Assembly: GCA_048013815.1 (NCBI GenBank)
Contig: CM106585.1
Span: 19,964,001 to 20,028,000, forward strand
Direction: 5' to 3'
Length of the DNA: 64,000 nt
Source: Setoptus koraiensis
Lineage: Eukaryota; Animalia; Arthropoda
Part shown: one piece after another, positions 37,078 through 64,000 of the stretch
Numbering within the stretch: position 1 is the first letter of the stretch
Layout: each line of letters opens with the position of its first letter
Position numbers and translations under genes: made by a program
Notes under the pieces: generated by a model
Databases searched by the model: none
The model's input: only the letters and a program-made list of their open reading frames with translations
What the model was told of the DNA's origin: nothing

Positions 37078-37170
37078 GAGCCGAAACGACGATAACAACG
37101 AGCCGAAGCGATGATAACAACGAGCCAAAGCGATGATAACAACGAGCCGAAATGATGATAATAATGATAG
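37078..37170. repeat. About 22-bp minisatellite (GAGCCGAAGCGATGATAACAAC) about x4
   Basis: Direct inspection. Confidence 0.8.
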
Positions 37171-37676
37171 AAATGATAATAATGGCGCTGTCCGCTCGCA
37201 GCCGCTGTCGGCCGTCATCGCGCGCAACAATCGTTGCGCCGTCAGCCGCGGATAATAGATACGTCAGGAATTATAATAATGCAACAATAACAACAACAAG
37301 TGCCCATTACAAGGCGCATGATTAGTAAAACAATAATCAACGCCTGGCATGAACGGTAATCGAGCGCCGGCAACAATTGCGTGTCGCTGCGGCCGTCGCC
37401 TTGACCGGCCCTGGCGAGCCCGACTTTGCGCCGCTATTGCTGGCTTATTATTTGCGGAAATGGCCGCGCTGACCATTGCCGGGCACACGATTGTGGCCTG
37501 TCGAGCGGCCACTCGAGTGGCCACAATCGACAACAATCGCGCCAACAGTTGGGGTGATAATTGAGCCTCATAAATCTTAACTAGCCGCTTAAATAATCGC
37601 ACAAACACTCATTAGCTGGCCAACAGCAGCGCCGGATTGGATGCAGTTGGCGAGATGCGCCATTCTCTGTTGGCAT

Positions 37677-37740
37677 GTTACATAACCCCGGCGTGTTACA
37701 TGACTCCGGCGTGTTACATAACTCTGACATGTTACATAAC
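37677..37740. repeat. 18-bp minisatellite carrying GTTACATAAC
   Basis: Cores at 37677, 37695 (variant), 37713 and 37731. Confidence 0.9.
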
Positions 37741-37898
37741 GCTGCTCGGTGTAAGGAGGCAACGCAATGCGGCCAAACATCATATCTGACGACAGCGACA
37801 GCAGCCAGGATATAGCGCATTATCGCCCTAGTGGCCCTAGTCCGTGTGTGACGTTTCGAGCGGCCGGCCTGCAAGCGACGACCGATGATCATTTGTTG

Positions 37899-37999
37899 CG
37901 CAACACGACGGCGGTTACGCAACACGCCGGCCGGTTACGCAACACGCCGGCCGGTTACGCAATACGATGGTCGGTTACGCAACACGATGATCGGTTACG
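37899..37999. repeat. 20-bp minisatellite x5 carrying CGGTTAC
   Basis: Cores at 37912, 37932, 37952, 37972 and 37992. Confidence 0.9.
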
Positions 38000-38007
38000 A
38001 AGCCGCT

Positions 38008-38082
38008 GATGACGATGATGATGACGATGATGACGATGATGACGATGATGACGATGATGATGATGACGATGATGATGATGAT
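38008..38082. repeat. (GAT/GAC)n microsatellite
   Basis: About 25 trinucleotide units, intronic. Confidence 0.95.
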
Positions 38083-41000
38083 GGTGCCGACACTTGATAC
38101 GGCGCAACAAGTGCAACCGTGTTAACTAACCAATTTTGGCCGGTAGCGGCCAAAGTTGCGCAATAACGCGATAACGGGGCCCATTGTTGACCGTTGGCCG
38201 GCACAATGGCCACTTGTGAGCGTTTGGCATTATGCGCTACCTGTTGAACTGTCGAGCGCTCGTTGCGAGCGCAATCAACGTGACCGCCACAAGCCTCCAG
38301 TCCTGCGAATCTCAAGTGGCCACTTGTGGCCATTCTCGCAACAGGTGAGCTCTCAGGCAACCTCACAGGTAACCTTACACAGGTGAGCTCACCTGAGCTG
38401 TTGCTGCAAGCAGCGGGTAGCAGCGGGCAACGGTTAACAAGCGAGCAGCCGATGAGCAGTTAAGCGGTGAAGTGTTGATGAGCGCATCGTGATAATAACT
38501 GTTAATTATAATTGTAATGACGTAATCATGTGTTGGCCGTTGCTGTCGTTGCTGCTGTTGTTGTTGCTGTCGTCGTTGCTGTTGTTGTTGCTGTCGACGT
38601 TGTTGTTGTTGTTGCTGTCGTCGTTGTTGTTGTTGTTGTTGTTGCCGTTGAGTCGTGCATTTCGCTCACTGCAGTGTCTCGCCATGGGCAGCTACGCGAG
38701 CGACACAAGTGCACAAAAGTGGCCATCATCGCGGCCCTCATTATGGCGAGTGGATAATGTTGCCGTGGCAACTGTCGACCGTCTATTAATCGACACGACC
38801 GGCGGCGATTGTTTGCGCGCGGCACGACCGCGCTCGCTCGCAAATTGGCCGCTCGTCGCCGGCCCATTGTGGGCCGCAATTTGTGGGCCGCAAGCCGCAA
38901 AATGGTGCCCGTCTTGACAACATTTTCGGGCGCCTTTCCCGGAGCCCGTCGCTGGCGTGCTCCGTTTTCGAGGGCACTTTTCGAGGGCGTGCGCTGTTTC
39001 CGGAGGCATTTCTCTGGGCCTGTCGCTAGTTTTCGCCGTTTTCGGGGGCACTTTTCGGGGGCGTGCGCCGTTTTGGAGGGCACTTTTCGGCGCTTCCGCG
39101 CCTATGTTCGGGCGCGGCCTCGAAGCGCGGCTCCAAAACTGGTAGCGTAACCGTGGCATAGAGTATGGAGTTACCGAGGGCATACCCGGCCGGCCGCTGG
39201 CATCCGCCAGGCCGACGGCGCGGCCAGAATCAATCTGTTTGCCTGTGTGGTTTCGGTGGAGAGTGATTGGTCGGCCGGTGGTTGGCGGTGGTTGGCGGTG
39301 GTTGGCGGTGGTTGGCGCTGTTGTTGGCGTTGCGGTCGGCGCTGGCCAGCGTCGGAGCTATTACCTGTGGAGCTGCGACCATTACCGCCACCAACTCGCT
39401 TTGTCTACTGCAAAGTCGCTAGCGTTATTACCTGTGTGTGCTTGTAAGATGTTATGCAATCGGCACGACGCAGATTCTCTAGTGTGTATTGCGTAATGTA
39501 CTGATACGCTTCAGCATCGGTGGTGCGCTGTATTACGCAATACTTAAATCGGTTGTCGTATTCCAACAGTGTGTGTGTGTTATGCAATGTATTATGTGTA
39601 TTACGTAATGTGTGTATGGGCAAATGAGCTACTGGTGCCAAGGCTGCCAATGCGGCCGGCTGACAGCAGCGCCGGTGAGCCAGCCAGCGGAGGTCAATGG
39701 ACGAGGCGAAACCGCATGAAGAGACGCACGCAACCGATAGATGCGAACAAAGTGTTTTACCTGTGTCTGCTTAATACTAATCTCCGCCGCTCGTTGTTGT
39801 TATGCAACACAGCCAGACAACAACAGCGACAGCGACAACAACAACAACAACATCAACAACAGCATCAACGACGACAACGACGACAACGACAACAGCATCA
39901 CCTGTTGCAGCAGCCAGACGGGCGAAGAGACAATTTGTGGCAGCAAATGAGCCGCCGGCAGCAACCTGCCGCGCTGCTGCGTGTAATGGAATTACGGCCG
40001 TCCGATCCCGTCCGCTCGGCCGCGATCCGCCGCGGTCCGATCCGGTGCCATCGATCATTTATTATTATTACGCAACCAGCATTGTCTAGACAAAGCTCAT
40101 TACGTCGGCGCTCGGCGCGACACAATAACGTCGCATTGTCTGCATCTCTGAATCATTGCATCGCAATCAATGATTGCGTCGCGTCGCAATCATTACGTAA
40201 TGTTGCTGCATCACAGCGGCACGCGTCCGCCGGCACGGACAGCTCGCAGTTCCCATTGCCCTTGACTCAAGAGTCTTGCTTTGCATTGCTGACTCTTGCA
40301 ACACTCTTATGTCTTGTGTCTTGCGTCAGCTGCTAGCTTGACACTTCGTTTGCCCGCGCATCCATCATTTATCGGTCAGCTGACTTGCAGTCAGCTGGCA
40401 GTCAGCTGACTGCCGGCTGTCAGTGCTGCAAACTGACGACCGGCGATGTGTCACATTATTATATGCATGTGTCATTCTATATATACAATGTTCGCTGGTG
40501 ATTTGCGTCATTGTGTTGCGCTGATTGACGCACTGAAATATGAGCAGCTGACACTTGACTTGCGAGCTGTCAAGACTCTGCACTCAAGAGTCAGAGGCGG
40601 GCCGGCGGGACGGACGGGCGGACGGGCCGGCGAGAGAGCCAGCGGACGAGAGAGCGGCGGGCGAGAGAGCGGCCGACGAGAGAGCGGCCGACACAAGTGT
40701 GTCGGGCGGAGTTGTCTCCGGCGTCTTTGCTCTCTCCCTGTCGCATCTAATCGCTCTGTTGCGAGAAATTTTTTCTTACTTTCGGCCATTCACCAATGTG
40801 TGACCATCGGCGACATCGATATCGAGCGAACGACATGGAGCAGATATAGTCTGCAGATATAGAATGTCTCAATTGGCCACACTAAGCAGCCACGGTCGTG
40901 CAATATGACAAATGGCTGGCGAGCTAGTTAGCCGCCGGTGGCCGCTGGCCAGTGACGCAGCGCACAGGTGAGTGTCAGGTTGCATCGGCATCGGCATCGG

Positions 41001-42871
41001 CATTGGATGTCTCAGCTGTGGCCGTTGGACTGTCGCTGTTGTGGTTGTGACTGTTGTCAATGTTGCCGATGTTGTCGTCGAAGTCGCTGCTGTCGTTGTC
41101 GTTGTTGTCGCTGCTGTCGTTGTCGGTGTTGTCGGTGCTGCTGTTGCGTTCATGGCGGCGCATCAGCATGAGCCGGCGCGATGGCAGCGGCCACAACAAT
41201 GGCTATGCTTGTCACAATAATTGGCTGCCCTCTCATCTCGAACAGCCGAGCGTCCAGCTCGAAGCCTGCGACGAGCCGGCTCGATGTGTCGCCGAACTCG
41301 CTCGGCTTCTTGTCGTTGGTTGCCGATTGCGCCGGACAAGCGCTGCCAGCCAACATGCCAGCGGCCGCTGCCGGCCGGTCGGTGGCGCTATGCTCGATTG
41401 GAGTCGCTCTTCGCAGCCGACCGGCCAGCGCTTCTGGCTCGCCCGATCGAGCCGTTCGAAGCGTCCGCGGCGTTCGGAGCGTCCGAGCGTCCGAAGCGTT
41501 CGAAACGTTCGAGCCGTTCGCACTGCGAGCGTCCGAGCGCTGCGAACGTTTTGGCAGGCGCGCCTGCCGACGAGCGCGCCGACACGGATCCAGCGAGCCG
41601 ACAGGTGAGCCTGTCCGTTTTGTTGGGCCGGCGAGCTTCAGTCGGGCAACAGTTTCCAGTGCTGGCCACCAGTCGCTGTTGCGTTGGCCCGCTGCCCGCA
41701 ACAACAACAAGTCGGCAACAACAACAAGTCAGCAACAATTCGCACAACGGCACCGTCGAGAGCGCCGCTCCGCACCGGAAGTGCCGTTTGTTTGCGTTCA
41801 GCGGTGGCCAGCCGCGCACCGGTAATTATTCTGGCCGCGGCCGCTTACCGCTTGCTGCTTGCCTCTTGCATCATCACGATCAGCTGGTCAGCTGTGTAGC
41901 GGCAGCGGCGGCGGCGGCACCATCTTGATCAGCTGATCAGCTCACCTGTGCCGCCGATGATTTGTTTGCTGCTGGCAGCGGGCGCGTCAGCTGATAATTG
42001 CGTTGCCGCAAAAAGCAGGATGCGGCCCTAGGTGGCCGCTGTACAGCGCTCTGTGCAGCGTTCACACATGCTCACAATGGTCAGTCGAATTTAATTCGAG
42101 CGTAACACCGCTGGCCACTGGCGTTGCGTAACACTGGCCACTGGCGTTGCGTAATAGCGGCAAGTGGCGCCGCTGATTGTGCCACTGATTATGCAATCAC
42201 TCACACAGCGCGATCAGCAATCAACGCTGCGCCTGATGATGCGCCTGTTGCGTCATGCCCGTTGCATCATCGGCGTAACGTATAAGTAACGTATTATGTA
42301 TAATTTGATAGTGTGTCGACAGGTGAATAGGCCGCCAATTAGGCTGACCGGCGCGGGTCAATAGACAGCCGATGCGCATAACAATGAGCGAATTGTGGCC
42401 AAGGTTGGCCGTTTAGTCGGCCTGATTGGCGTGATTAAGGCGCGATTCCGGTCGGCCGAACGGGCCGAACCGGCCCGAATCGGCGCCAATCGGCGCAAAT
42501 TCGCACGCTCGCCCTGCCGCTACTCCGGTCGCAACTGCCAAACTCACCTGTACGGCACCCACTCAATTGGCGTCCGCTGCGACGCCGACAGACACAGCAA
42601 TGTACTGACTACATTGTAGTGACCACATTGTAGTGACAATTTAGCGACTACATTGCAGTGCAGTGACTACAAATCAAACTGCAAATTTGGCCAGTGGCGC
42701 CCTTCGAGCGCGCTCGCCGTGCGCTCAACGGTGCCAATTTATAACTTTGGTCTTAATCGCCAGAGTGCAAACACTGATTACACTGTACAGTTACGCACAT
42801 ACGCGGTGCGACATGCAGTTGTCGGCTGGCGCCCGCAGCTCACAGCAGCTAATTCCGTCCCATCAAGCGGT

Positions 42872-42945
42872 CGGAATTGGCGGTCAGAATCAGCGGTCAG
42901 AATCAGCGGTCAGAATTGGCGGTGAGAATTAGCGGTGAGAATTGC
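42872..42945. repeat. 12-bp minisatellite (GCGGTCAGAATC/T) about x6
   Basis: Direct inspection. Confidence 0.85.
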
Positions 42946-43672
42946 ACTAAAACTGGGGTTTTCGCGCGCCAAACAGTCCGTTTGTCGTGGATGCCGGGGC
43001 AGAATCTGACGCCGGCGCGGTCGGACAGCCGGCGAGCGGCGCCCGAACGGTGCCGTTGATATTGTTGTGATAGCGTTGTGGCCACTCGCGGCACCGGGCC
43101 GCACTCAATGGTGTTGCGCAATAGTGCCCGAGAGATTATCGCCGGCCCGAACCGACCGCCTGTCCGCTAATCCGCCGATTCGGCGATTCGCTCATTTGCA
43201 TTAACCGGCCAATTCGGCGATTCGCTCATTTGCATTGACCGGCCAATTGGCCAATTCGAATTCGCGGCCAGTGCAAGCGTCGGCGCTGCTCCACTTTTGC
43301 GCCGCCGGCCAACACTGCGGCCAACTGTGGCGCCACTCTGACACACATAACAGACTCTGTTAAACAGAGTCGCCGAGCGAGCCGAAAGTTGTCAGCTGAC
43401 CGGCCGCTGACAAATGCGAAATGTCACTCGAAATGTCACAGCTGACGGCTGCCAATCAGCTGACGCCCACTGACAGCCGACGCTTTTTTGCGTGCGCTGT
43501 CAGTGTCACCACTCACAATTGTCAATCTCGCTTGCACTCGCTAGCCCACTTACTATCAGCAGCTTGATTGCGTAATAACAATTGCATCATCTCTTTCTCT
43601 CCCATTCTCAAATGATTTTCCAATGATCCAATTCGCTGCGCGTCTGTCGACCGCGATTGTCGGACATTGCAG

Positions 43673-45457
43673 GCCACGCGCAGGCCCTCAAACAGAAGCG
43701 GCGCTGCCCGCGGGCGTGGACCTTCGAGCGGGTAGCCGGATACGAGATGAAGACGCGCCCCAGGAAGCGGCTGACGCTGCCCGCCAAGGAGCACTGTATG
43801 GAGGCGTGTCTGCTGGAGACCGAGTTCGAGTGCCGCTCGGCCAATTGGTACCGGAACAGCCGCGAGTGCAAGCTCAGCGACCAGGACAGGCACTCGGTGA
43901 CACAAACCGGCCCGAACGACCACATAATCAAGTCGTCGCTCATAGAGCATTACGGGCCGCTGGTGGCGCCCGGCCCGCACAACCAGCTCATGTACGCGGG
44001 CCAGGTGTATTATCCGGTGTCGCCGGCGACGGCGGCGCCCGGCTTCAACGAGGCCCTGCTGGCGGCGCGTCACAAGCAGCACAAGCATCAGCAGCAGCCG
44101 GCCGCCAGCGAGTGGTCGTGGCAGCAGCGGCCCGACCACAAACAGCTGCGGCCCGATTTGCGGGCGCGGGCCGGCCGCGTGCTCGCCCAGAACCAGAGCC
44201 GCGCCCAGCAGGCGTGGCCAGCGGGCGACAGTGCGGAGCAGCTCGCAAACGGGCAACAATTCGCGAACAGCCAGCAGCAATTTGCGCAGCACAACAACAA
44301 CAACAAATCGCTGTCGGCCGGCCAACAGGCCAAGTTGTCCAACACGGGCAACAACCCGTTCGCGGGTCTCGCGGACGACCCGGCGGAGCCGGGCAGCAGC
44401 ACGGGCGACACGGGCGCCGACGACGACGACAACCGCCTGTTCGTCGGTCAGCACCACCACCAGCTGCAGCAGTTATCACAGCAGCACCAGCAACAGCAGC
44501 AGCAGCAGCACTCGCAAACAATGTACCACCAGCAGTCGCTGGTGGCGCCCCTGGCGGGCGGCGCCGGGCCGGGCATGTCGGGCTCGGTGCAGCCCGCTTA
44601 CGCAATAGTGGACTATTTGGAGAACAATTGCATCTATGAGCCCAACAAGCTGTGCGAGTTTCGAAAGTTGCAAAATCGTATACTCAAAACGGTGGACAGC
44701 ATATATCAGGACATACAGACGCTAGACGAGTGCAAGCAAAAGTGCATCAACGCCCCCTATCGGTGCTACTCGTTCGACTTTGGCGACACCGCAAATCACG
44801 TGTGTCGCACGTCTCACCTGGACCAATCGTCGCTGACCACCGTTCAGGAACCGTATCTCGAGGTGATGGGCGCCATAACGTACGAGCTGGCGTCGTGTTA
44901 CCACGTGTCTATTACGTGTAAGGCGCGCGAGATGGTGGCCAAGGTGAAAACGAGCAAAATGTTCAATGGAAAAATCTATGTAAAATCTAGGCCAAAAACT
45001 TGCGTCAACGACATTGAAAACTCGCTAGAATTTGAGATACAAATGCGATATAATGATCGCGAATGCGACGTTAAATCCTCTTCGACGAGCAGCCAGGGAG
45101 TGTTCAGCAACGACATTGTCATACAGCATCACGATCGCATTGTCACAACGCAAGACGTGGGCCTCAGCATCCATTGTCAGTACGATCTGACCAACAAGAA
45201 CGTCACCAACAACGTCAATTTGGCCATCGACGGCCTCGACGACTCAATGGAGTCCAAGAACGACCTCGCGCCGGCCAGCGCCACCCAACAGACGGCCGCC
45301 AACGCCAACAAACCGTTCAAAATCACCAGTTTGGCCACCACGGTGGTCAAGTCGCCAAACATCAGCATGAGCATCACAAACATACACGGACAGCCCATCG
45401 GCACGGCCACCGTGGGCGACCGGCTGGCGCTCATGTTCGAGATCAAGGACAAATCAA
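43673..45457 (+). CDS. PAN/ZP protein exon 2: PAN-2, PAN-3, ZP-N
   Basis: Acceptor TTGCAG| at 43672, phase 1. CPRAWTFERVAGY, CRSANW...CKLSDQDR, DYLENNC...LCEF...RILKTVDSIYQD, CYSFDFGDT, IVIQHHDRIVTTQDVGLSIHCQYDL. Donor AA|GTGAGT at 45457/45458. Confidence 0.92.
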
Positions 45458-45571
45458 GTGAGTATCGCGTGATTGCGCCGTTGCGCAATCTCGACACATT
45501 TCCATATTTCAACATTTTTGCCGCAATCGCCGCGCGCTCGTTGCGCAAGCTCTCATCGCACAGCTCTGACC

Positions 45572-45627
45572 GCCACAGTCTGGCCGCCACAGTCTGGCCG
45601 CCACAGTCTGGCCGCCAGAGTCTGGCG
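45572..45627. repeat. 14-bp minisatellite (GCCACAGTCTGGCC) about x3.5
   Basis: Direct inspection, about 115 bp after the exon 2 donor. Confidence 0.85.
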
Positions 45628-48065
45628 TAATCGCCGCATAATTCACCGGCTCGCCGCTGACTCGGGCGAGCCTTATATAATAAGGGTTGCCCGTAATGAG
45701 GTTGCGTAACGAGCGTTGCGCAATCACGCCAACATCGTGCTTCATGTGGGCCGCTGCATGCGCCGGCCCGCACGACTATGACGACAATGAATATGACGCC
45801 GAATGCAACCATGAATGACAAACGAGCGACACCGGCGCACACTGACAGCTCACAATTGCCAGTGACAATCAGCTGTCACGCACAGCTGATTGAACAGATC
45901 GAGAACAGGTGATTAGGTAATTAGCGGCGTCGCTTGTTGTTTTCGTTTGTTTGTCTCGTTTGTTTGTCTCATTTGTTTGTTTCGTTTCGTTTGTTCGGTT
46001 CGATTTTTGATGCCGGCGCGACACACGACGACTCGGTATGTGGCTCGATTGCGCAACGACATGCGTTGCATGTCGCACAGTGTGTGTGTGTGTGTCATAT
46101 TATGTAACTTACATAACATTATTATGACGTAACGTTAACAATTGTAGGTTTGGTTGGCCGAGCCGCATGGTGCCGTTGCGCAATTGCGCACCGCGGCCGG
46201 TGACACGACAGGTGATTTGTTGGCCAGATGAAGCGAGACTCGCTCGCCCGCCCGCCCGCTCGCTCGGGCACAACAACAAATCACTGCAAATCACAAGCGG
46301 CCCCACGGCTGCCCGATCCCGATCAGCTGGCCGACAATCAGCTGGGGCTAGTCGGGCTCGGCGAGCTGATTACCCATGAGCCCATCAAAACTTGCTGCAT
46401 CAAAACAAATTGTTATGTAAAAGTTACGTAATTGTCTGCTGTTATGTGATTGTGTGCTGCTGTTATGTTACATTGACAACAAATGTGACCATTGTCCGCA
46501 TGACATTTGCATTGTCACAACATGTCATGCGTGCTCTGACAAACAGCTGGCCAGTGACAGCGCGTTGCGACAGTCACTGCGACGGACAGTGCGACAACAT
46601 TGGTGACACTGCTGTGAGACGCATTACGCAATTGCACCACGCAAAACTACCTGTGCACCGACGGTTGAGGGCGCCACAAACGAGCGAGAGTCAACAACAG
46701 CGACCGGCCAACACAAACAGGCGAGCATTGTTTGCGGTTGCGTCACGTCACGATTGGCGCTGACTTGTTTTGACATTTATCATTTTGTTTTCGTTCGCAA
46801 TATTGGCCAATATTGCGCGCCAGTTCACTGGCGCAGCCCGTTGGCCGCTGACCCGCGCTCGCGTCGGTCGCGTCGGTCGCGTCGGGCCGGCCGGGTGCTG
46901 CCGACACAACAATGGCACCCAGCGCGAAGCCGCTCGCAAACCATCGGTCAGCGACAGTCGAGTCGCGATTGTCGATCGAGTCGCTACTGTCAGTCGCGCA
47001 TCGGACGCTCAATTGGCAGGCACAATTGCGCGCCCGACGCCGAGATATGCCGACGTATGGACGGTGCAATATGGAGCCGCGGTGCGGACGCAGGGCCAAT
47101 TATTGGCATTGTTGTGTCGCCCGTGTGTGCGGCGGCCGAGCGCGGCACGAAACTAGCCCGAGACGCGACCAGACTAGCGACAGACCGGCCAAACTGGCCG
47201 CCGACGGCACAGTCTGCGGTCGCGCCGGGCCGGCGCGTTTACTTTTGCTGGCCGGCGCGGCGACCGCAGAAGGACACTCTTGTTGGTCATCTTTTGATTG
47301 GCGTGTGTGTCCACAAAAGTGACTCTCGACTCGAGAGTCTCGAGCGCCGGCAGAGTATCGAGAACGGAGACAAACGCCGATCGTTGACCCTGCCAGTCGG
47401 CCGTCAGTGGCGATCGACTGGCTCGTTACGTAACTGGACCCGATGCGAGCCTCGAGTCGACAATCTCACCTGTCCTTGCCGTCATTTGTCGTCATTCGCT
47501 CTCGTTTGCGGGCGCTTCCTCTCGCTTGGCGCGGTGTCAGCCATTTTTGCTTTTTTGCTCTCGGGCGAGCGCGGAGAAAGTCGCCTCGGCGCTCATTGCG
47601 TCAGTGTCACTGTCAGTGTCTGACAGTGTCTGACGATCAGCGATGCGCGTATCACCTCATTCGTCACGTCGTCGACGCTGCCTAGTCGCTTGCGACCTGA
47701 CACATTCGCGACAACTATTCCGACACAAATTCAAATGCGGATTCAAAAATGTTGCCCACGCTCGGCTGGCAAACATTTTTGAGGGCTCGCGATTGAACGT
47801 TTAATTAGTGCGCTTTCACGGGCAACACGTGCCCTGTTTTTGCTCGCACTGAGCGGCTCGCAATGCGCCCCAACTTACAATTAATTAATGTTATTTAATC
47901 ATGATATTGAATGATTGATATGATAGTTGTTGCATCATATAAATGTGATGATATCACACGTATTTGTTTGACTGTTGGCTGCTGGCTCGGTTGGCGCCAC
48001 CGTCGGTCGCTCGGTGGTCGCTCTACCTAGGTATTGTTGGTTGCACTGTCAGTTGTCAGTTGTCG

Positions 48066-51653: not shown

Positions 51654-54148
51654 GTCCCTTTGGCATCTTTGTTAGGGAAATAGTGGCCATAGACGGCAAA
51701 ATAAATCACCAATTGGCAGCCAATCATCAGCATATAAAACAACAGCAACAAACTAACGATTGGAACGATGAACTCGCCTTCCTATCGGCCGCCAGCTCAA
51801 ATCCCACAAGCCAATCGGTGCTTCTCGTGGACTCGCTTGGCTGTCCCACCGACTCAAACATAATGGGGCCCCTCACTAAAATGGACCCCATTGGTCAGAC
51901 CATATTGGCCCCGTTCGATGCCTTCAAGTTTCCCACTTCCGATGTTGTTTTGTTCAAGGCGGTGGTCACAACGTGCGTCTCCGAATGTGAGCCCGTCTAC
52001 TGTGGCCTCCAATCTTCATCTACCATGTCCCCCCCATCATACCAGTATCCGCAGTCGCCCTCTCAGCACTCGTCCTCTAGCACCCTGGCGCCGCCCACCA
52101 CAACCAGTGCCACCACTCAGACTTTGTACACTTACGCAACACCCTTCGCGGGCTCCTCCTTGTCAACATTTACCAGTGCCACTAGCGGCGGTGGTGGTGC
52201 CAACACCGCCGCCGCCATTGGAACAGGCGGAACCGCTGGCAGCACCGGAAGTACTAGGCCGGCAATGTCGATGTTGCCGGGCGGGCAAGTGACATTCAAC
52301 AACAACACTGGCACTGGCAACCCGGTTGTCAAACCGGGCAATCAAAGCGGTCTGTTCGGGCCAATGACTACGCCCTCGGTACCGTTCAGCACGTTTCCGC
52401 CGCGCGGTGTTGCCGCGGTCAGTGCCACAACTACAAGCAGCAACAGCAACAACAGCATCAACTCTACCCGAATGAACCCGCCGCCGCTGCCGCAGCAGCA
52501 GCAACAGGCTACCGGGCAATATCCGGCAGTTATAAAGCCAATGCCGGGCAGCGGCAGTGGCATCAACCCGCAGTTCTTCAACTACAACCCGGCGGCCCAA
52601 TCCCAGTCAGCGGGCGTAAACAAGTTAGACTTCAATCTCGCCGACCTAGTCAATCAGATGACCTCCGCGATAGACGGCGACATGCGTCGCACCAGCAACA
52701 ACAACAAGTGGCCCCCCGCCGACCACCCTAGCGGCAACAACAGCAACAACCAAATGGACAACAATCACGAGATGGCAACACGATATTCGCAAATGGACAC
52801 ACAATTGTTCGATACCGATTCGGCGGGGCCACAGCAATTGGCCGGCGATTCGACCGGCTACCGGAACAACAGCACCAACCGTGTTGTTCCAACTAGCGCA
52901 AACATAAACGGCGACACTAGCATGGATCTGACCTATAGCGGCGACAAGTCGTACCTGTCGGGTGGTCTGCCCGTGGCGCAGCTGTATCAGCAGCAGTTGC
53001 ACGGGTCCGCCGTCAGGTCGTATGGCAAAAAGAAGCGGAAGCGCAGAAGAAAGAGACACGATCTAGAGGCCAATATCGTGGAGCCGAGCGGCGCCGTTAG
53101 CGATCCGTCGCGGACCAGATCGCAGACGCAGCACCGCAACGGTAGCGGCAACAACAACAACTTTCAGCTCAGCATGAACCTGGACGACATTAAATTTCAT
53201 CAGTTAAGGGCCAACATTGTGGACATGGATCAAATCAAGGAGATTCTGTCCAGGGGCCGGGACTACCGCACGCGACAGGCCAGACAATACAATGGGCATT
53301 CCGCGAGAACCGCCACGGCCGACAACAACAACATCAAGCAACCTGTTTATGAGATGGACGAGCTAGTGGTGCAGTCTATCCGCATTGTGGACAAGCTCCA
53401 TTTTGACACTAATGACACGGCCAACGGCCCTACTGGCCAGGCAACGGCCAGGGCCAGAAAATTGCAAGATTCGCCCACCAAGACAACCGACCCCACACAG
53501 ACGGCCACACAGATGAACAAATCAGCGGCCAAGACCAAAACAATCCTCGAGGGCTCCTCGAACCCAACTGGCGAACAGCAGCAACAAGCAACCGATGACG
53601 CTGATTCCAGCAGCAGCACCGACAGACGGTCGTCGAGTAACGGCAACGACGACGACAACAACGACGACAACGATGACGCCGGAGCCCCCATAGGCCACGT
53701 GGGCGCCACCATCAATAGAGGCACTCTCAATAATACGGGCGCACTCAGTCTCATAATAGGCACTGTATCATTTGTTTTTGTTCAGATATTCTTTGTATTA
53801 ATTTGCTTTGTCAGCTGGAACAAACACCATACAAGGACGCTGGCCAATTCGTCGAGCCTATCTCAGCACACTCAATCCATGATAAGTAGTTCACCCTCCA
53901 ATCTTGACACTATCAGTCTACAGTCACAACACCAACAAGCCAATTGTAATATTTTGAGCGACGGCAGAAAAGTGTATCAATATCAAGCCTATAATTTACC
54001 GCCAACATTGAACAGTTTATCGGACTATGCCACCACTAGATCCATTATTAGCGACAACAATTGTAACAATAACCAAAAAACTATGTCTCTCAAGTGCCTT
54101 GATAAAAAGTGTATAATGTGCTATGATATATTTACTATTAATTTGTAG
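51654..54148 (+). CDS. PAN/ZP protein exon 3: ZP-C, furin site, TM, cytoplasmic tail
   Basis: Acceptor TACTAG| at 51653 gives SPFGIFVREIVAIDG. LLVDSLGCPTD, FDAFKFPTSDVVLFKAVVTTCVSECEPVYC, SYGKKKRKRRRKR, LVVQSIRIVDK, TM SLIIGTVSFVFVQIFFVLICFVSW. Spliced CDS is 553+1785+2495=4833 nt (1610 aa). Confidence 0.9.
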
Positions 54149-57100
54149 ACAAAGAAAATGAATTAAATTATTTAATCTATTTCCACGCTTCCAAGATACT
54201 TTGCCGATTATTTCATTAGTGATGACGACTTTACATAAGAGATTGTTAATTGAATAAACGACGAGATGTACCATCGTCATATTGTTCGATGTGAGTCAAG
54301 ACAGCGGCCATAACAGCAGCACAGCAGCAGCGGCATCAGTAGGACTTTTCGGAAGGAAACTATGTTAATAGATTTAAGATAAGAATTCTATTCAATTCTT
54401 TGCAACAGGCGCGGGTTTCGCAGCGGGTTCCTTCTTTTTGTTGTTGTCTTTGGAGGCCGGGCCTGCGGTGGCTGTTGGCTTAGGGCAAGCATCAGCAGTA
54501 GCTTTAGAAGAGTCAGTTAGGCCTACTTGGCTTAGGGCGGCCGCATCCTCGTCGGGTCTGGTAATCTGGCCACGTTCTTGTATTTGGTCACCACAAGATC
54601 CGAGGCGATGGTCGTGTCTGGGTCGTCTCCTTTTTCCGACATGACTACGCTATTCTATACACACACACACACCGTTTGTGGCGATAATATTTGTGGTGAT
54701 AATATTTGTGGTGATAATATGTGTTGGGTAATATGTGCCGTGATATGTGTGGCAATATGCGTGTGATATCGTGGCGAATGATGGCCGCGAACAGTCACTT
54801 GTTACAGGCGTGCAACGATATTGTGTGTAAGTGATAGCAGCAGCGTATGCAAATGATAACGATAATATGCAAATGTCTATTAAATGATGGCCTTCGAAAA
54901 TAAATATATATTTATATACGATATCACTGATATTTATTATCAGTATGGTGGTGTGGATATTGGCATGTTGTGCACGCTTCTTTTAGTTTCTCGCTCTCTC
55001 TCTGTCTCTCACTCGCTCACACACTGTGCATGTTGCTTGCTGGCCCGTCTGTCTTCCTGTTTGTCTGCCGTTCTAATTTTAGCTGCTGCGCCAATGGCGG
55101 GGGGCGTGACAGAGGCCGCCCGGCGGCAATTTTCGAAAAAACACGGCGGCGGCAACACAATCGGCCAACTTGAGCCGCGGCGGCGCCCGCCAACATTATT
55201 CATGCCAACTCGGGAGGGGGGAGGCAGGCCAACGTATTATAAGCTGGCCTCTCCCACACGTGGGAGCGCCAACCAACAACCGCACGCAAAACAACAAAGA
55301 ATCTCCCATGAGCTGGCCCAACCCGCAGTCGGGAGCCCGCCGGAGTCGGGACTCGGGAGCGCGAACCACGCGTAAACAAAAACAAGCCACACGGAATTCC
55401 GGCACACGCATTTGCCGGCGGCCGGCCAGCCCAGTCGATATGCTCGCAGCAAACCACAAAAGCCCATATCATCAGGATTTAGAAAAACTTAAATAATTGC
55501 ATTTATTCAACTCAGCTTAGCTCGTATTGTTGTATCACTCTATTTACATCGATTAATCGCTTGTTGTTGTTGTTGTAACTACCACCGTGCTGGCTTTTAT
55601 TAATACTCTTCAATTATACTCTTTGTTCTCAGATAATCCTGCAGGGCCTCGGCTCCCAAATCCTTGCCGAAACCACTTTGCTTGAAGCCACCAAACGGAG
55701 CGGCCACGTCAGTCTTGTTGTACACGTTTATGAAACATGTGCCCGCGTCTAGACCGTCGGCAACGCGTTGCGCCTTGGATCTGTCTGATGTTATCACACC
55801 AGATGCCAGACCGTAATCGGTGCTGTTGGCTCTCTCGATAACTCCGTCGATGTCGCCATAACCAAACTTGCTCACAATCATTATTGGGCCAAACGATTCC
55901 TCTTTGGCGATAAACATGTCATCGGTGACATCCGTAAATACGGTCGGCATGAAAAAGTAACCCGCTCTGTCAGCGCGACGGCCTCCGTACACCAGCTTAG
56001 CGCCTTCCGCAACTCCCTTGTTACAAAAATCTATTAGGTGCTCCAAATGCTTCAAATGATTCTGTGGTCCGTGGTCTGTTGATCTCTTGAATGGATCATC
56101 AATTTTCATTTTGGCCACATTCTCAACAACACGTGCAATAAACTTGTCATGTACTTTGTCCTCTACAAATATTCTTCCCGCTGCAATACAATTTTCACCC
56201 TTGTTGAAAAAGACACTCGACATACCATAACGGACGGCCTTGTCTAAATCACAATCGGAAAATATTATCAATGGTGACTTTCCACCAAGTTCTAATGAGC
56301 ATCGTTTAAGATTGGACATGGCACAAGATTGCATTATTCGTTTGCCGGTTGGCGTGCTACCCGTGAAGCCCAACTTTCGAATGCCAACATGATCGCAAAG
56401 TGCCTGGCCACACTCACCGCCAGTACCTGGCACAATATTTACGACACCGGGAGGAAAGCCAGCTCTGACGGTTAGCTCAGCCCATTTCAATGCTGTCAAG
56501 GGACAAGCTTGTGCCGGCTTCAGAACAAGAGTGTTACCAGCTGCCAGACACGCGGCAGCCTTCCACGACACCATCATCAATGGATAGTTCCAAGGTGTTA
56601 TAATGGCACAAACACCGATGGGCTCCTTCTTGGTGATGGCCAAATTGCGGTTGGGTCGGGCCTGGTTGATAGGTATCACTGAACCCTCGATCTTGTCGCA
56701 CCATCCAGCGAAATACCTAAATACGTCTATCGACATTCCAATATGTGTCTTGATGGCTAATGTGTATACTGCACCACTATCTAGAGTTTCAATGGTAGCT
56801 AACTCTTGCTTGTGTTGTTCCATAAGATCGGCCAGCTTGTTAAGGAGCTTACCTCGATCACGAGCATTCATTAGTCTCCATTTGCTATCAGGACGGAAGG
56901 CTTTCTGGGCAGCTTTCACAGCTTTGTCCACGTCTTCTCGGGTGGTCAATTGGACTTTGCAAATTGTTTCTTCGGTTGTTGGGTTTACAATATCCAAGGT
57001 GTGGTTTGGTTTTGAAGAGTTGACGAAATTGTTACCAATGAATATTTGATTGGGAAACGAAACTTCCATCTTGTTTGCATGAATTACAACGGGCTTATAA

Positions 57101-57334
57101 TCTTCAGGCAGTTTGCCGCTGGAAGAGCCCTCGCCGCGCATTTTTCTCACAACCAATTCGACAAAATCCTCGAATTGGGTTGCCATGTAAACATCCTCAG
57201 TCTCTAGCTCAGCACCGTCACCCACCAGATCTTTGACTTCCTCCACTAAACGAGTCACATCCATCGAGCTCGCGCCAGTATAGAAGAAATCTGTGCTAGC
57301 TGTGACATCGCACGATAATATAGCTTGCCATATG
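54041..57334. repeat. Tandem segmental duplication, copy X1 (ZP 3' end, internally deleted PA2G4, ALDH1L 3' half)
   Basis: 54041-54555 matches 57432-57946. 54568-55600 matches 59203-60232 with indels. 55600-57334 matches 60232-61966 with 4 substitutions. Confidence 0.95.
54392..54642 (-). pseudogene. PA2G4: PA2G4 remnant with a 1256-bp internal deletion and 12-nt filler
   Basis: Reads MSEKGDDPDTTIASDLVVTKYKNVA, then out-of-frame RLPDPTRMRPP*. Filler GTCTGGTAATCT at 54556-54567 replaces 57947-59202. Confidence 0.88.
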
Positions 57335-57405
57335 TCGATGTCGCCATAACCAAACTTGCTCACAATCATTATTGGGCCAAACGATTCCTCTTTGGCGATA
57401 AACAT
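55600..57405 (-). CDS. Chimeric, N-terminally truncated ALDH1L (carrier domain + ALDH domain, no formyl-THF hydrolase domain), 601 aa
   Basis: 24 aa from the templated insert ([24 protein letters not shown]) are fused in frame to IWQAIL...GASSMDV (phosphopantetheine Ser) and a complete ALDH domain (LELGGKSP Glu, GENCIAAG Cys). Expression unknown. Confidence 0.55.
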
Positions 57406-57433
57406 GTCATCGGTGACATCCGTAAATACGGTC
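57334..57433. repeat. 100-bp templated insertion at the duplication junction
   Basis: Identical to 55846-55945 and 60478-60577 (ALDH1L 3' coding sequence). Shares G at the left junction and TC at the right junction. Confidence 0.93.
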
Positions 57434-57539
57434 CATTATTAGCGACAACAATTGTAACAATAACTAAAAAACTATGTCTCTCAAGTGCCTTGATAAAAAG
57501 TGTATAATGTGCTATGATATATTTACTATTAATTTGTAG
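57432..57539 (+). pseudogene. Orphan copy of the ZP-gene C-terminus with a nonsense change
   Basis: Copy of 54041-54148. CAA at 54074 reads TAA at 57465. Confidence 0.8.
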
Positions 57540-57782
57540 ACAAAGAAAATGAATTAAATTATTTAATCTATTTCCACGCTTCCAAGATACTTTGCCGATT
57601 ATTTCATTAGTGATGACGACTTTACATAAGAGATTGTTAATTGAATAAACGACGAGATGTACCATCGTCATATTGTTCGATGTGAGTCAAGACAGCGGCC
57701 ATAACAGCAGCACAGCAGCAGCGGCATCAGTAGGACTTTTCGGAAGGAAACTATGTTAATAGATTTAAGATAAGAATTCTAT

Positions 57783-58388
57783 TCAATTCTTTGCAACAGG
57801 CGCGGGTTTCGCAGCGGGTTCCTTCTTTTTGTTGTTGTCTTTGGAGGCCGGGCCTGCGGTGGCTGTTGGCTTAGGGCAAGCATCAGCAGTAGCTTTAGAA
57901 GAGTCAGTTAGGCCTACTTGGCTTAGGGCGGCCGCAACCTCGTCGGCGGCGTCCTTCTTGGCTTTGTTGGACTTCTTTTTCTTTTTGGCCGCGGCCGACG
58001 CGCTAGCAGAGTTACTACTTTGCAAGAGTTTCACTATTGATTGATCTTCAATCTTATGTTCTGTCTTATAAATACTTAGATCATAGTTGGGTAAACCTGT
58101 GATCTTGTGGGATCTGGTTGGCATTAAGAGTACTGTGAATTTGAATTGGGCTACGCATTCTCCTTCTTTTTCGTGAAGTACCGGGAATGGCTCAATTAGT
58201 TTGTGACTGACACACTCTTTGAGACCCATTTTTGCCTTGACCTCATCATCGAAGTATCTCAAGGTGAAAGGCATCAAACCAAATTTTCTGTCAACATCAC
58301 TATAAACAGCGCGCGAGGCCCTCATTTTCAGCTGATATATTTCGTCTGTCTTTTTGTATATTGTCGTTTTGGTGTCTAGTTCTCGGCC
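57783..58388 (-). CDS. PA2G4: Proliferation-associated 2G4 / EBP1, exon 2
   Basis: Acceptor ACGCAG| (intron 58389-58569). GRELDTKTTIYKK...MPFTLRYF...VLHEKEGECVAQFKFTVLLMP, with a Lys-rich C-terminal motif. Confidence 0.93.
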   Translation of the reverse strand, partial: GRELDTKTTIYKKTDEIYQLKMRASRAVYSDVDRKFGLMPFTLRYFDDEVKAKMGLKECVSHKLIEPFPVLHEKEGECVAQFKFTVLLMPTRSHKITGLPNYDLSIYKTEHKIEDQSIVKLLQSSNSASASAAAKKKKKSNKAKKDAADEVAAALSQVGLTDSSKATADACPKPTATAGPASKDNNKKKEPAAKPAPVAKN

Positions 58389-58569
58389 CTGCGTGTGGAA
58401 GGCGCATGAAAGAGAAATGGGTATTTGGAAGCAATGGTTACTACGTGGATCTATAGATGTGATAAACATGATAATCATAAACATGATAATCATAAACATA
58501 ATAATCATCAACATGCACACAAATAGGTGTGGATATCAGTGGGGATGTTAGCGGATGTTAAAAACTCAC

Positions 58570-59277
58570 CTTGCCCTCGCCGGTGGACACAAGCACGTCA
58601 ATTGCGTAGACCTCGTTCACTTCAAATTCGCACTTCTCGTGGCCCTTCCTTTGGGCCTCTGTAGGATTTTGAATAATGGACTTTTCGCCGTCGATTCTAA
58701 ATTGTTTTAATTGATGAGATAACATACCAGAGACAGGTTTACAATGATAAGATTCGGCCACCTTTTGTATGGCGTCCGTGACGGCCTCGTTTTCGCCGCC
58801 GGGCACCACCAGTCGCAGGGCGACGGCGGCCGCTTGATGCGCTGCATGTATAGCGTCGGCCTTTGGGCCGGTGGCCGGATTTTCTGGTGTTGCGCCAATG
58901 ATTAGGGAATGGGCCACTACGGCTATGTAACCGTCGATATGTGCACCTAAATCAATCTTAACTAAGTCGCCGTTTTGCAGTTTAATGTCCTCGTCTGATT
59001 TTAGGGGCGAATAATGACAGATACAATTGTTGACAGAGATACACGTAGGGAAGGCAATGCCGCGTCTCATTTCCTTGTCGCGCTTGAACACCTTGCTGGT
59101 CTCGTCGGCCATGATCTTGTCGCCTAGTTCGCACAATTCCAGCAGGCTTGCATCGTGGACGCACTTGTCTACGACCGCCTTGAGGGCCTGATTGACAATG
59201 TCGGCCACGTTCTTGTATTTGGTCACCACAAGATCCGAGGCGATGGTCGTGTCTGGGTCGTCTCCTTTTTCCGACAT
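58570..59277 (-). CDS. PA2G4: Proliferation-associated 2G4 / EBP1, exon 1
   Basis: DLVVTKYK, GIAFPTCISVNNCICHYSP, GDLVKIDLGAHIDG, YAIDVLVSTGEGK. Donor AAG|GTGAGT, phase 0. Total 437 aa. Confidence 0.95.
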
Positions 59278-60231
59278 GACTACGCTATTCTATACACACA
59301 CACACCGTTTGTGGCGATAATATTTGTGATAATATTTGTGGTGATAATATGTGTTGGGTAATATGTGCCGTGATATGTGTGGCAATATGCGTGTGATATC
59401 GTGGCGAATGATGGCCGCGAACAGTCACTTGTTACAGGCGTGCAACGATATTGTGTGTAAGTGATAGCAGCAGCGTATGCAAATGATAACGATAATATGC
59501 AAATGTCTATTAAATGGTGGCCTTCGAAAATAAATATATTTATATACGATATCACTGATATTTATTATCAGTATGGTGGTGTGGATATTGGCATGTTGTG
59601 CACGCTTCTTTTAGTTTCTCGCTCTCTCTCTCTCTCTCTCACTCGCTCACACACTGTGCATGTTGCTTGCTGGCCCGTCTGTCTGCCTGTTTGTCTGCCG
59701 TTCTAATTTTAGCTGCTGCGCCAATGGCGGGGGGCGTGACAGAGGCTGCCCGGCGGCAATTTTCGAAAAAACACCGCGGCGGCAACACAATCGGCCAACT
59801 TGAGCGGCGGCCGCCAACATTATTCATGCAAACTCGGGAGGGAGAGGCAGAGCAGCGTATTATATATAAGATGGCCTCTCCCACGTGGGAGCGCCAAAAA
59901 GACGCCGCACGCAAAACAACAAAGAATCTCCCATGAGCTGGCCCAACCCGATGTCGTGTCCGTAGTCGGGAGCCCGCCGGAGTCGGGACTCGGGAGCGCG
60001 AACCACGCGTAAACAAAAACAAGCCACACGGAATTCCGGCACACGCATTTGCCGGCGGCCGGCCAGCCCAGTCGATGCTCGCAGCAAACCACAAAAGCCC
60101 ATATCATCAGGATTTAGAAAAACTTAAATAATTGCATTTATTCAACTCAGCTTAGCTCAATTTGTTGTATCACTCTATTTACATCGATTAATCGCTTGTT
60201 GTTTTCGTAACTACCACCGTGCTGGCTTTTA

Positions 60232-63012
60232 TTAATACTCTTCAATTATACTCTTTGTTCTCAGATAATCCTGCAGGGCCTCGGCTCCCAAATCCTTGCC
60301 GAAACCACTTTGCTTGAAGCCACCAAACGGAGCGGCCACGTCAGTCTTGTTGTACACGTTTATGAAACATGTGCCCGCGTCTAGACCATCGGCAACGCGT
60401 TGCGCCTTGGATCTGTCTGATGTTATAACACCAGATGCCAGACCGTAATCGGTGCTGTTGGCTCTCTCGATAACTCCGTCGATGTCGCCATAACCAAACT
60501 TGCTCACAATCATTATTGGGCCAAACGATTCCTCTTTGGCGATAAACATGTCATCGGTGACATCCGTAAATACGGTCGGCATGAAAAAGTAACCCGCTCT
60601 GTCGGCGCGACGGCCTCCGTACACCAGCTTAGCGCCTTCCGCAACTCCCTTGTTACAAAAATCTATTAGGTGCTCCAAATGCTTCAAATGATTCTGTGGT
60701 CCGTGGTCTGTTGATCTCTTGAATGGATCATCAATTTTCATTTTGGCCACATTCTCAACAACACGTGCAATAAACTTGTCATGTACTTTGTCCTCTACAA
60801 ATATTCTTCCCGCTGCAATACAATTTTCACCCTTGTTGAAAAAGACACTCGACATACCATAACGGACGGCCTTGTCTAAATCACAATCGGAAAATATTAT
60901 CAATGGTGACTTTCCACCAAGTTCTAATGAGCATCGTTTAAGATTGGACATGGCACAAGATTGCATTATTCGTTTGCCGGTTGGCGTGCTACCCGTGAAG
61001 CCCAACTTTCGAATGCCAACATGATCGCAAAGTGCCTGGCCACACTCACCGCCAGTACCTGGCACAATATTTACGACACCGGGAGGAAAGCCAGCTCTGA
61101 CGGTTAGCTCAGCCCATTTCAATGCTGTCAAGGGACAAGCTTGTGCCGGCTTCAGAACAAGAGTGTTACCAGCTGCCAGACACGCGGCAGCCTTCCACGA
61201 CACCATCATCAATGGATAGTTCCAAGGTGTTATAATGGCACAAACACCGATGGGCTCCTTCTTGGTGATGGCCAAATTGCGGTTGGGTCGGGCCTGGTTG
61301 ATAGGTATCACTGAACCCTCGATCTTGTCGCACCATCCAGCGAAATACCTAAATACGTCTATCGACATTCCAATATGTGTCTTGATGGCTAATGTGTATA
61401 CTGCACCACTATCTAGAGTTTCAATGGTAGCTAACTCTTGCTTGTGTTGTTCCATAAGATCGGCCAGCTTGTTAAGGAGCTTACCTCGATCACGAGCATT
61501 CATTAGTCTCCATTTGCTATCAGGACGGAAGGCTTTCTGGGCAGCTTTCACAGCTTTGTCCACGTCTTCTCGGGTGGTCAATTGGACTTTGCAAATTGTT
61601 TCTTCGGTTGTTGGGTTTACAATATCCAAGGTGTGGTTTGGTTTTGAAGAGTTGACGAAATTGTTACCAATGAATATTTGATTGGGAAACGAAACTTCCA
61701 TCTTGTTTGCATGAATTACAACGGGCTTATAATCTTCAGGTAGTTTGCCGCTGGAAGAGCCCTCGCCGCGCATTTTTCTCACAACCAATTCGACAAAATC
61801 CTCGAATTGGGTTGCCATGTAAACATCCTCAGTCTCTAGCTCAGCACCGTCACCCACCAGATCTTTGACTTCCTCCACTAAACGAGTCACATCCATCGAG
61901 CTCGCGCCAGTATAGAAGAAATCTGTGCTAGCTGTGACATCGCACGATAATATAGCTTGCCATATGGTCTTGATGGAAGCTTGAAGTCTTGTCTCATCCT
62001 CGTTGAGAACTAACGGTGGCCTGTTTGCTTCTGGGCTGCCATATGACGATGCTAGAATCATTTTTCCTGTTGCTGCAAATTGAACTTTGGATACATTAAC
62101 TGGCCTATTGTCACCATTGGCAAACAACAACAGACCATCCTCGTGCACAATACCTTGCCTCGACATACCCTCGACATCTACCAATCTAACAGCTTCTGGT
62201 AGTCCGTTTTCAACACGATAAACGGAAGAACCAAAAAGACGAACCTTCTCCGGCTGTCCACCTGGTAGTGATAGGTTGATCCACGCTCCGGGAACTTTGT
62301 CCATACCTCTGATGAAATTGTGCACTACTTGAGCAGAGGAATTATCAAATTTCAGCTGACATAACTCATCCTTGTTTCTGAGAATGCCCTCGTACGTGGC
62401 AAGAGCCTCTGATTGAGGTATACGCGGTGCTTGGTTTGTGTTGATCAAGCCAACAGCTTCCACAAGTCCATCAATACCGGCTGGATATAGAAATCTAGTA
62501 TATAGAGTTTCAACCGTATCGTTGACCTCGATGTAGCACGATTTCTTGAGCAAAATCGGTCCTGTGTCAAGTCCATCGTCCGTCCAGAAGATTGTAAATC
62601 CAGCCTCCTCGTCACCCATGATAAGAGTCCAGTTAATAGAGGCACCACCACGATGTCTTGGCAACAGAGACGGGTGATAGTTGATTGATTTGAATTCTGG
62701 AGCTTCAATCACTTCAGTTGGAATGAATTGATTGCAATAGGGCAAAACGTTCAAATTGGCTCCGACGGATTTGTATTGCTCGACAACTTCGGGTATTGCC
62801 TGTTTCTTTAGTTGCCATCTCTTGAATTTGAACACTTTCAGATTGAATTCCTTGGCTGTTGTTGCCAATATATCCTCGCGACCTGTTCTTTCATCATCCG
62901 GAATGGTAAACACACCGGCTATTGTATAACCTTCATTGATGAGCTTTCGCAGAAATTCTGCCGAAAACGCCGACTGGCCTATTACGGCTATACGTAGTGA
63001 GCTAGTGACCAT
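60232..63012 (-). CDS. ALDH1L1: 10-formyltetrahydrofolate dehydrogenase (ALDH1L), intronless, no evident mitochondrial leader
   Basis: 926 aa. RIAVIGQS, HPSLLPRHRG, DDGLDTG (hydrolase domain), GASSMDV (carrier domain), [30 protein letters not shown]. Confidence 0.96.
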   Translation of the reverse strand: MVTSSLRIAVIGQSAFSAEFLRKLINEGYTIAGVFTIPDDERTGREDILATTAKEFNLKVFKFKRWQLKKQAIPEVVEQYKSVGANLNVLPYCNQFIPTEVIEAPEFKSINYHPSLLPRHRGGASINWTLIMGDEEAGFTIFWTDDGLDTGPILLKKSCYIEVNDTVETLYTRFLYPAGIDGLVEAVGLINTNQAPRIPQSEALATYEGILRNKDELCQLKFDNSSAQVVHNFIRGMDKVPGAWINLSLPGGQPEKVRLFGSSVYRVENGLPEAVRLVDVEGMSRQGIVHEDGLLLFANGDNRPVNVSKVQFAATGKMILASSYGSPEANRPPLVLNEDETRLQASIKTIWQAILSCDVTASTDFFYTGASSMDVTRLVEEVKDLVGDGAELETEDVYMATQFEDFVELVVRKMRGEGSSSGKLPEDYKPVVIHANKMEVSFPNQIFIGNNFVNSSKPNHTLDIVNPTTEETICKVQLTTREDVDKAVKAAQKAFRPDSKWRLMNARDRGKLLNKLADLMEQHKQELATIETLDSGAVYTLAIKTHIGMSIDVFRYFAGWCDKIEGSVIPINQARPNRNLAITKKEPIGVCAIITPWNYPLMMVSWKAAACLAAGNTLVLKPAQACPLTALKWAELTVRAGFPPGVVNIVPGTGGECGQALCDHVGIRKLGFTGSTPTGKRIMQSCAMSNLKRCSLELGGKSPLIIFSDCDLDKAVRYGMSSVFFNKGENCIAAGRIFVEDKVHDKFIARVVENVAKMKIDDPFKRSTDHGPQNHLKHLEHLIDFCNKGVAEGAKLVYGGRRADRAGYFFMPTVFTDVTDDMFIAKEESFGPIMIVSKFGYGDIDGVIERANSTDYGLASGVITSDRSKAQRVADGLDAGTCFINVYNKTDVAAPFGGFKQSGFGKDLGAEALQDYLRTKSIIEEY

Positions 63013-63289: not shown

Positions 63290-63765
63290 ATATTGATCGT
63301 AATCAGATTGCATCCCTCTTCAAGTAGTAACAGACAGACTTGGTTTGCAGACGGCTCACTTTTACTATGTTAGAGTTGCTCAAAGTTGAACGCAGCAAAA
63401 TAATGCTATGGATGGTATCGATATTGTCGAGCTTATTTGCCAGTCCGTATGATTTGTAAATTGGACAAGGTGTCTTTATCGTAATCAGATTGCATCTCGT
63501 TGAGTGGTGGAGGCCGAACTTGAGTGCGGGCGGCACATTTTATTCTATTAATGTTGTGGATGGTGCCAATGTTGTCGAGCTTATTTGCCAGTTTGTATGA
63601 TAGCTTGTGTGGATCGAGCAAGGTGTCTCTGTAGTTATCATGTTGCATCTAGTCAAGTATAGCAGAGGCCGAACTTGATTGGAGGCGTCTAAATCAATCT
63701 GTGCAAGTCAAAACTGCATAATGCTTCAGGATGGTAACCATATTGTCGAGCTTATTTGCCAGTCC
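63290..63765. repeat. Degenerate ~150-170 bp tandem repeat (about 3 copies)
   Basis: Shared core TGTCGAGCTTATTTGCCAGT at 63425, 63573 and 63744. Shared ATCAGATTGCATC, CAAGGTGTCT and GAGGCCGAACTTGA blocks. Confidence 0.8.
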
Positions 63766-64000
63766 TAACAAAGTTGTTGTATAATGGCACTACATAAGAC
63801 GGAGATTGCATAGCTATTATATCAATCTCTTTGTTGTTTATTTTATTTGTTAAGATACTATGATAACTTGGTGTAAATTGTAGATGCTTACACTCAGGAA
63901 ATTGCATCAATATCACTAGATAGCCTATCTGACAACATAACAACGTCTATTACACAATAGATAAGTGGTAAAATAAGGTGCCTGCGGACACACGTACAAG

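Follow-up and report, generated by a model that had tools for sequence, protein, structure and literature searches.

A candidate template-switch duplication with a copied junction insert in the genome of the eriophyoid mite Setoptus koraiensis

A 64-kb stretch of the Setoptus koraiensis genome, analysed here at its full length of 64,000 nucleotides and called the window below, contains two direct copies of one segment, and between them lies a 100-bp piece that also occurs inside each copy. The question raised by this locus is whether it records a real duplication formed by template switching, or a single-copy locus of which two haplotypes have been laid end to end during assembly. Altogether, we favour, with a probability of roughly 0.55, a real complex tandem duplication, evolutionarily young and non-functional, in which a 4.5-kb block was doubled through non-homologous template switching or end joining.

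The first-pass annotation had proposed that the two copies, X1 and X2, are direct repeats of a segment of about 4.5 kb, and this was borne out by a repeat finder, by BLAST (the whole window against itself, and likewise its last 14 kb) and by a global MAFFT alignment of X1 against X2, all three in agreement. The anatomy of the locus can be read off directly:

54041-57334: X1, the shortened upstream copy, consisting of an A part (54041-54555) and a B part (54568-57334)
54556-54567: 12-bp filler at the deletion in X1, where the equivalent of 57947-59202 is gone
57334-57433: junction piece, an exact direct copy of 55846-55945 / 60478-60577 (100/100 identical, same orientation)
57432-61966: X2, the full-length downstream copy, 4535 bp
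55846-55945: candidate template in X1, covering ALDH1L codons ~812-845 with the EESFGP motif
60478-60577: candidate template in X2, with the same letters as the X1 source

The A part matches 57432-57946 of X2 with 2 mismatches in 515 bp, and the B part matches 59203-61966 with 97.7% identity over 2786 columns (22 mismatches and 19 gap openings). Between the two parts, the 12 bp of X1 stand in place of 1256 bp of X2; a search for a template of this filler gave no local match of at least 10 bp, flanks included, and only chance 7-mers. The block contains the 3' tip of a ZP-type gene, the whole PA2G4 gene, the PA2G4-ALDH1L spacer and the 3' 1.7 kb of ALDH1L, and is repeated head-to-tail as one contiguous segment without long flanking repeats. 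BLAST self-comparison detected no further repeats on the scale of X1 and X2 elsewhere in the 64-kb window, and no other copy of the junction or of the block is found in the 48.8-Mb assembly. This layout bears on the idea that the tandem arose by non-allelic homologous recombination (NAHR), that is, unequal crossing-over between prior repeats, or by capture in a mobile element. The tandem arrangement is the only feature that such an origin would account for; the two ends of the block have just 1-2 bp in common, neither 54041 nor 61966 is flanked by a repeat, the search for inverted repeats and element ends was negative, and the content consists of host genes. We therefore regard either route as very improbable.

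The junction piece had likewise been claimed as a 100-bp copy of sequence within the block, and the match is confirmed at 100% identity. With an E-value of ~1e-47, it is not due to chance. Since the sources in X1 and X2 are identical, the donor of the piece is indistinguishable; the distance from the junction piece to its source is 1389 bp for X1 and 3045 bp for X2. The block ends in ...CATATG, after which GTCTTG follows downstream of X2; in X1, the final G of the block leads straight into the copied piece, which in turn ends in ...ACGGTC, its last TC being the first TC of the next copy of the block. The piece overlaps the end of X1 by this G (57334) and the start of X2 by this TC (57432-57433), and with overlaps of 1 and 2 bp the unambiguous insert is 97 bp long (57335-57431). 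Both overlaps had been put forward as microhomologies of the kind left by template-switching repair. They are indeed present, but by our own calculation two random joins would show overlaps of at least 1 and at least 2 bp with a chance of ~0.11, so that they say little about the pathway and lose most of their weight as a microhomology signature.

Gene identities were obtained from Pfam and PDB sequence searches, in which the PA2G4 exons were each searched separately against references. The region is intron-poor, and the state of each gene is directly visible:

51683-54148, + strand: last long ORF (821 aa) of a ZP-type gene, with a ZP-C end, a basic cleavage site and a membrane span
57783-59277, - strand: PA2G4/Ebp1, intact, with two exons and an intron at ~58395-58565, in X2 only
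60232-63012, - strand: ALDH1L (10-formyltetrahydrofolate dehydrogenase), intact, a single 926-aa ORF with its last 578 codons in X2
55600-57405, - strand: truncated ALDH copy, a 601-aa ORF, in X1

PAN and cuticlin-N (ZP-N type) domains are further features of the ZP-type gene. X1 opens with the final 108 bp of its ORF, an AT-rich and putative coding tail, and the X2 copy of this tail (57432-57539) holds an in-frame stop. The two PA2G4 exons cover residues 5-237 and 234-383 of the solved PA2G4, while ALDH1L contains Formyl_trans_N, Formyl_trans_C and Aldedh domains and aligns end to end with the solved cytosolic 10-formyltetrahydrofolate dehydrogenase (residues 1-902). The earlier statement that one intact copy remains of each gene (ZP in X1, PA2G4 and ALDH1L via X2) holds at the ORF level. 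In the 601-aa ORF, the ATG and the first 24 codons are supplied by the junction piece, which preserves the ALDH frame, and the ORF is in frame with ALDH1L from residue 349; according to the alignment with the solved enzyme, truncation at this residue interrupts helix one of the carrier domain. Most probably, none of the truncated pieces is functional, and this applies to the 601-aa ALDH ORF as well. Exact matches to the products of ALDH1L, the chimeric ORF and PA2G4 exon 1 are absent from a collection of 15 billion proteins.

The fate of PA2G4 is central to the choice between a real duplication and two concatenated haplotypes. The deletion in X1 spans PA2G4 from residue ~26 almost to the C-terminal tail, and a six-frame search of the whole assembly yielded no second PA2G4, the next matches being M24-family relatives with 34% and 29% identity. 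Because PA2G4 is single-copy and deleted from X1, X1 as a stand-alone haplotype would be PA2G4-null. Eriophyoid mites are described as haplodiploid (PMC8752673; Helle and Wysoki 1996 as cited in PMC7738191), and such a haplotype would be exposed in haploid males, an argument whose weight depends on PA2G4 being essential. The loss of the only PA2G4 from X1 thus argues that X1 lies in cis with X2.

The pattern of differences between the copies, also directly observed, points in more than one direction. In the ALDH part, the 1735 shared coding bases contain four differences, all at third positions and synonymous, and none that is non-synonymous (S=386 and N=1345 sites; pS 1.0%, pN 0). Neutral decay at the rate given by pS would have produced ~14 non-synonymous changes, and finding none has a P of ~1e-6; the probability that four of four changes are synonymous is 0.0025, or 0.018 if the X1 lineage alone was free to decay. 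The PA2G4-ALDH1L spacer (54568-55599), by alignment-dependent counts, holds ~18-24 substitutions and 11-19 indels, concentrated at 54887-55330, and the intergenic core of the copies differs by 3-4%. Overall, X1 and X2 diverge by ~0.7% in substitutions. Judged by this pattern, the two copies differ as alleles do, having diverged while their genes were under selection. Three readings remain: alleles placed in tandem by the assembler, a young real duplication, or a real duplication with a selected chimeric ALDH ORF. A young duplication may have caught two haplotypes, or polishing of the pooled sample may have assigned different segregating variants to its copies.

That the duplication is old and its ALDH fragment decayed neutrally was also considered and is ruled out by the 0 non-synonymous changes against ~14 expected. 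As for the A part, one of its two differences is a C/T change at 54074/57465, responsible for the in-frame stop in the X2 copy of the putative ZP tail, and the other is a T/A change at 54546/57937 that replaces V by D in what X1 retains of the PA2G4 tail. Each of the two harms the redundant fragment, with the proviso that the coding status of the ZP tail is putative.

The explanation of the locus as an assembly artefact supposes that it is single-copy and that two haplotypes of a polymorphic pool have been laid end to end, X1 being a deletion-bearing allele and X2 the common one. This could have come about, for example, if two Flye contigs were extended into the same graph edge and the 100-N gap between them was later replaced by sequence. 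The probable history of the assembly gives this account substance. The DNA came from >100,000 wild individuals that were pooled, sequenced with PacBio CLR at 496x, assembled with Flye v2.6 and polished in one round (PMC11920263). The assembly then went through purge_dups, 3D-DNA and Juicebox, and its authors state that gaps were 'filled' during polishing (PMC11920263). The k-mer heterozygosity of 1.13%, the assembled length of 49.9 Mb against an estimated 45.7 Mb, the 5.1% duplicated BUSCOs and the count of 266 contigs (PMC11920263) complete this picture. The Flye versions of that time put exactly 100 Ns at each scaffold join (PMC7500977), which makes a junction piece with a maximal length of exactly 100 bp suspicious. 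Accordingly, the excess of assembled over estimated length, the duplicated BUSCOs, the noisy reads of a pooled wild sample and the agreement in length with a Flye join all count in favour of the artefact and against a real duplication. So do the allele-like differences, with coding changes that are synonymous only, a spacer that differs by several per cent and an overall divergence comparable to the heterozygosity. In addition, the near-chance overlaps and the lack of excess point changes beside the breakpoints count against a real event: the final 225 bp of the block and the insert are free of differences, and the only difference near the block start lies 33 bp in.

However, the artefact meets several difficulties. 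We know of no assembly step that swaps Ns for an exact copy of DNA from 1.4 kb away. If a 100-nt fill had been made nevertheless, its first base and its last two would have to match the flanks by chance, for which we calculate a probability of ~0.009. The window contains no N, and hence none at or near the junction. The assembly consists of two sequences of 24,221,962 and 24,533,333 bp, and one of them (C1, which holds the window) is interrupted at C1:5451711-5452210 by exactly 500 Ns, a gap of the type written by 3D-DNA that no repeat spans; the two 'contigs' are therefore scaffolds, and the junction, unique in the assembly, does not lie at one of its 500-N gaps. No other exact local copy of ~100 bp was seen in ~240 kb of sampled blocks, a small sample that gives this point little weight. 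The artefact also demands that a haplotype without the genome's only PA2G4 was common enough in the pool to yield a clean consensus. Finally, noisy CLR reads normally cannot separate haplotypes that are 1-3% apart, and assemblers normally collapse them, so that splitting of haplotypes by Flye is not expected here. The rejection of a simple haplotig overlap by the first-pass annotation accordingly stands in so far as no assembler mechanism was found for the distant piece and PA2G4 is lost from X1; it is insecure in view of the allele-like differences, the pooled Flye 2.6 sample and the match with the 100-N gap length. On balance, we consider an artefact possible but doubtful.

The absence of non-synonymous changes would also be explained if the duplication were real but older and the 601-aa ORF were expressed and kept by purifying selection. 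The putative protein would consist of 24 insert codons, a remnant of the ALDH1L carrier domain and the ALDH domain, and the ratio of 0 non-synonymous to 4 synonymous changes would be its mark, with a P of ~0.018 even if only X1 was free to change. The insert is in frame and provides an ATG, both differences in the other duplicated fragments are damaging (the stop in the X2 ZP tail and the V to D change in the X1 PA2G4 tail), and solved structures exist for the ALDH domain of this enzyme in isolation (e.g. 2o2p). On the other hand, no promoter is evident, the ORF begins in former 3' flanking DNA, 378 bp downstream of the stop codon of PA2G4, and the truncation passes through the first helix of the carrier domain. 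Four differences are few, an allelic origin or the polishing of a pooled sample would give the same pattern in a non-functional ORF, and an insert would be in frame by chance in one case in three. That selection has maintained this ORF is in our view unlikely, and it is equally improbable that a working gene was born at the junction, with its ATG taken from the templated insert and purifying selection acting on it while the other fragments decay.

A real, young duplication is what we consider best compatible with the head-to-tail repeat and with an exact, same-orientation junction piece taken from inside the block. Two backward switches during replication or break repair are the simplest account of this anatomy, and correspond to the pattern known from FoSTeS/MMBIR. 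Synthesis would have reached the end of the block (equivalent to 61966) and switched backward by 1.49 kb, re-priming at 55846 and copying ~97-100 nt; a second switch would have led a further 1.9 kb back to the block start (54041), from where synthesis would have run on. The redundant PA2G4 of X1 would have been removed by the 1.26-kb deletion with its 12-bp filler, either in the same event or later. The differences between the copies would then be mostly variation that arose under purifying selection, whether standing alleles caught by an exchange between two chromosomes or polymorphism sorted during polishing of the pooled sample. The two-switch event postulated earlier is thus consistent with the anatomy, while its support from microhomology is weak. 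That single molecules carry the junction, the order of the events and the repair pathway are all inferred.

The surroundings of the locus, and other parts of the genome, were examined in the ~240 kb of sampled blocks, which were partly hand-picked. A head-to-tail duplication with a period of ~4.2 kb, patchy identity of 83-96% and ~6 bp between the copies is present at C1:7818121-7826557. On the other sequence, at C2:22536421-22540290, a whole PGK gene is repeated in tandem with 94.7% identity, both frames being open; the 658 bp between the two copies have an 80%-identical relative at C1:7860674-7861249, on the other chromosome. Dispersed duplicates with 83-99.5% identity are found at C1:20.66 Mb and C1:19.73 Mb, and a 2.2-kb inverted pair with 91.7% identity and a spacer of ~360 bp forms a head-to-head palindrome from window position 63660 (C1:20027660-20032318). 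Both tandems are clearly older than the present duplication, and all of these duplications are too diverged to be haplotype artefacts. Judging from the sampled blocks, local non-homologous duplication, sometimes with a junction filler, appears to be natural in this lineage.

Some further features of the window are recorded here in their own right. The inverted pair runs ~4.3 kb past the window end. Three direct copies of a 53-nt unit, with 74-100% identity and spaced by 148 and 171 bp, occupy 63401-63772. The GC content is 55-59% at 34000-48000, compared with 40-47% in the neighbouring stretches, and this high-GC stretch coincides with PAN/ZP exons and with low-complexity repeats at 38.5, 39.8 and 48.3-48.8 kb.

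If the duplication is real, it provides a clean and fully reconstructable case of a compact, intron-poor mite genome making new DNA, in which a two-step copying slip was accompanied by the complementary loss of the redundant PA2G4 and by the formation of an in-frame chimeric ORF. Together with the older duplications, it would suggest that the structure of this genome is regularly altered by non-homologous template switching. Should the 601-aa, hydrolase-less ALDH1L derivative turn out to work, the locus would represent a dated and mechanistically transparent origin of a new gene via a template-switch junction in a streamlined genome. If, instead, the duplication is an artefact, it exemplifies a class of error to be screened for in Flye assemblies of pooled samples, namely a haplotype duplication hidden behind a filled 100-N gap. 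Either way, the event is of a known kind and opens no new question.

Among known systems, the closest are the complex tandem duplications with templated junction inserts that have been described for human copy-number variants and in other eukaryotes and attributed to FoSTeS/MMBIR (replicative template switching). The present locus shares with them the head-to-tail order, a direct-orientation insert taken from within a few kb, very short homology at the joins and the lack of flanking repeats. It differs in that its 1- and 2-bp overlaps are near the chance level, no cluster of point mutations accompanies the breakpoints, and the copies already carry allele-like variation; moreover, it is known from assembled sequence alone.

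End joining by polymerase theta, the second pathway to be compared, also leaves short overlaps and copied filler at junctions, and the filler of the X1 deletion, at 12 bp, has a length typical of this pathway. Templated inserts made by polymerase theta are typically far shorter than the junction piece and copied from within ~100 bp of the break, whereas the source of the present 97-100 nt is 1.4 kb (or 3.0 kb) distant; in turn, the 12-bp filler is without a local template. Polymerase-theta end joining is therefore a poorer fit for the 100-nt insert, although it fits the filler of the X1 deletion. The window itself has ORFs for both a POLQ-type helicase and a family-A polymerase:

27017-29728, + strand: POLQ-type helicase ORF (DEAD, Helicase_C and POLQ_helical domains)
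30082-32319, + strand: family-A DNA polymerase ORF (DNA_pol_A)

The two ORFs are adjacent, and could belong to a split polymerase theta or to a single gene that has a short intron and a nearly absent central domain.

The last comparison is with false haplotypic ('heterotype') duplications. The locus resembles these in copies that differ by about the heterozygosity, in its derivation from a polymorphic pool sequenced with noisy reads and in a junction piece with the length of the assembler's gap. It departs from them in that no gap is present at the junction, which consists of real sequence from 1.4 kb away, and in the loss of the sole PA2G4: in a false duplication each copy should be a viable allele, and X1 is without nearly all of this gene.
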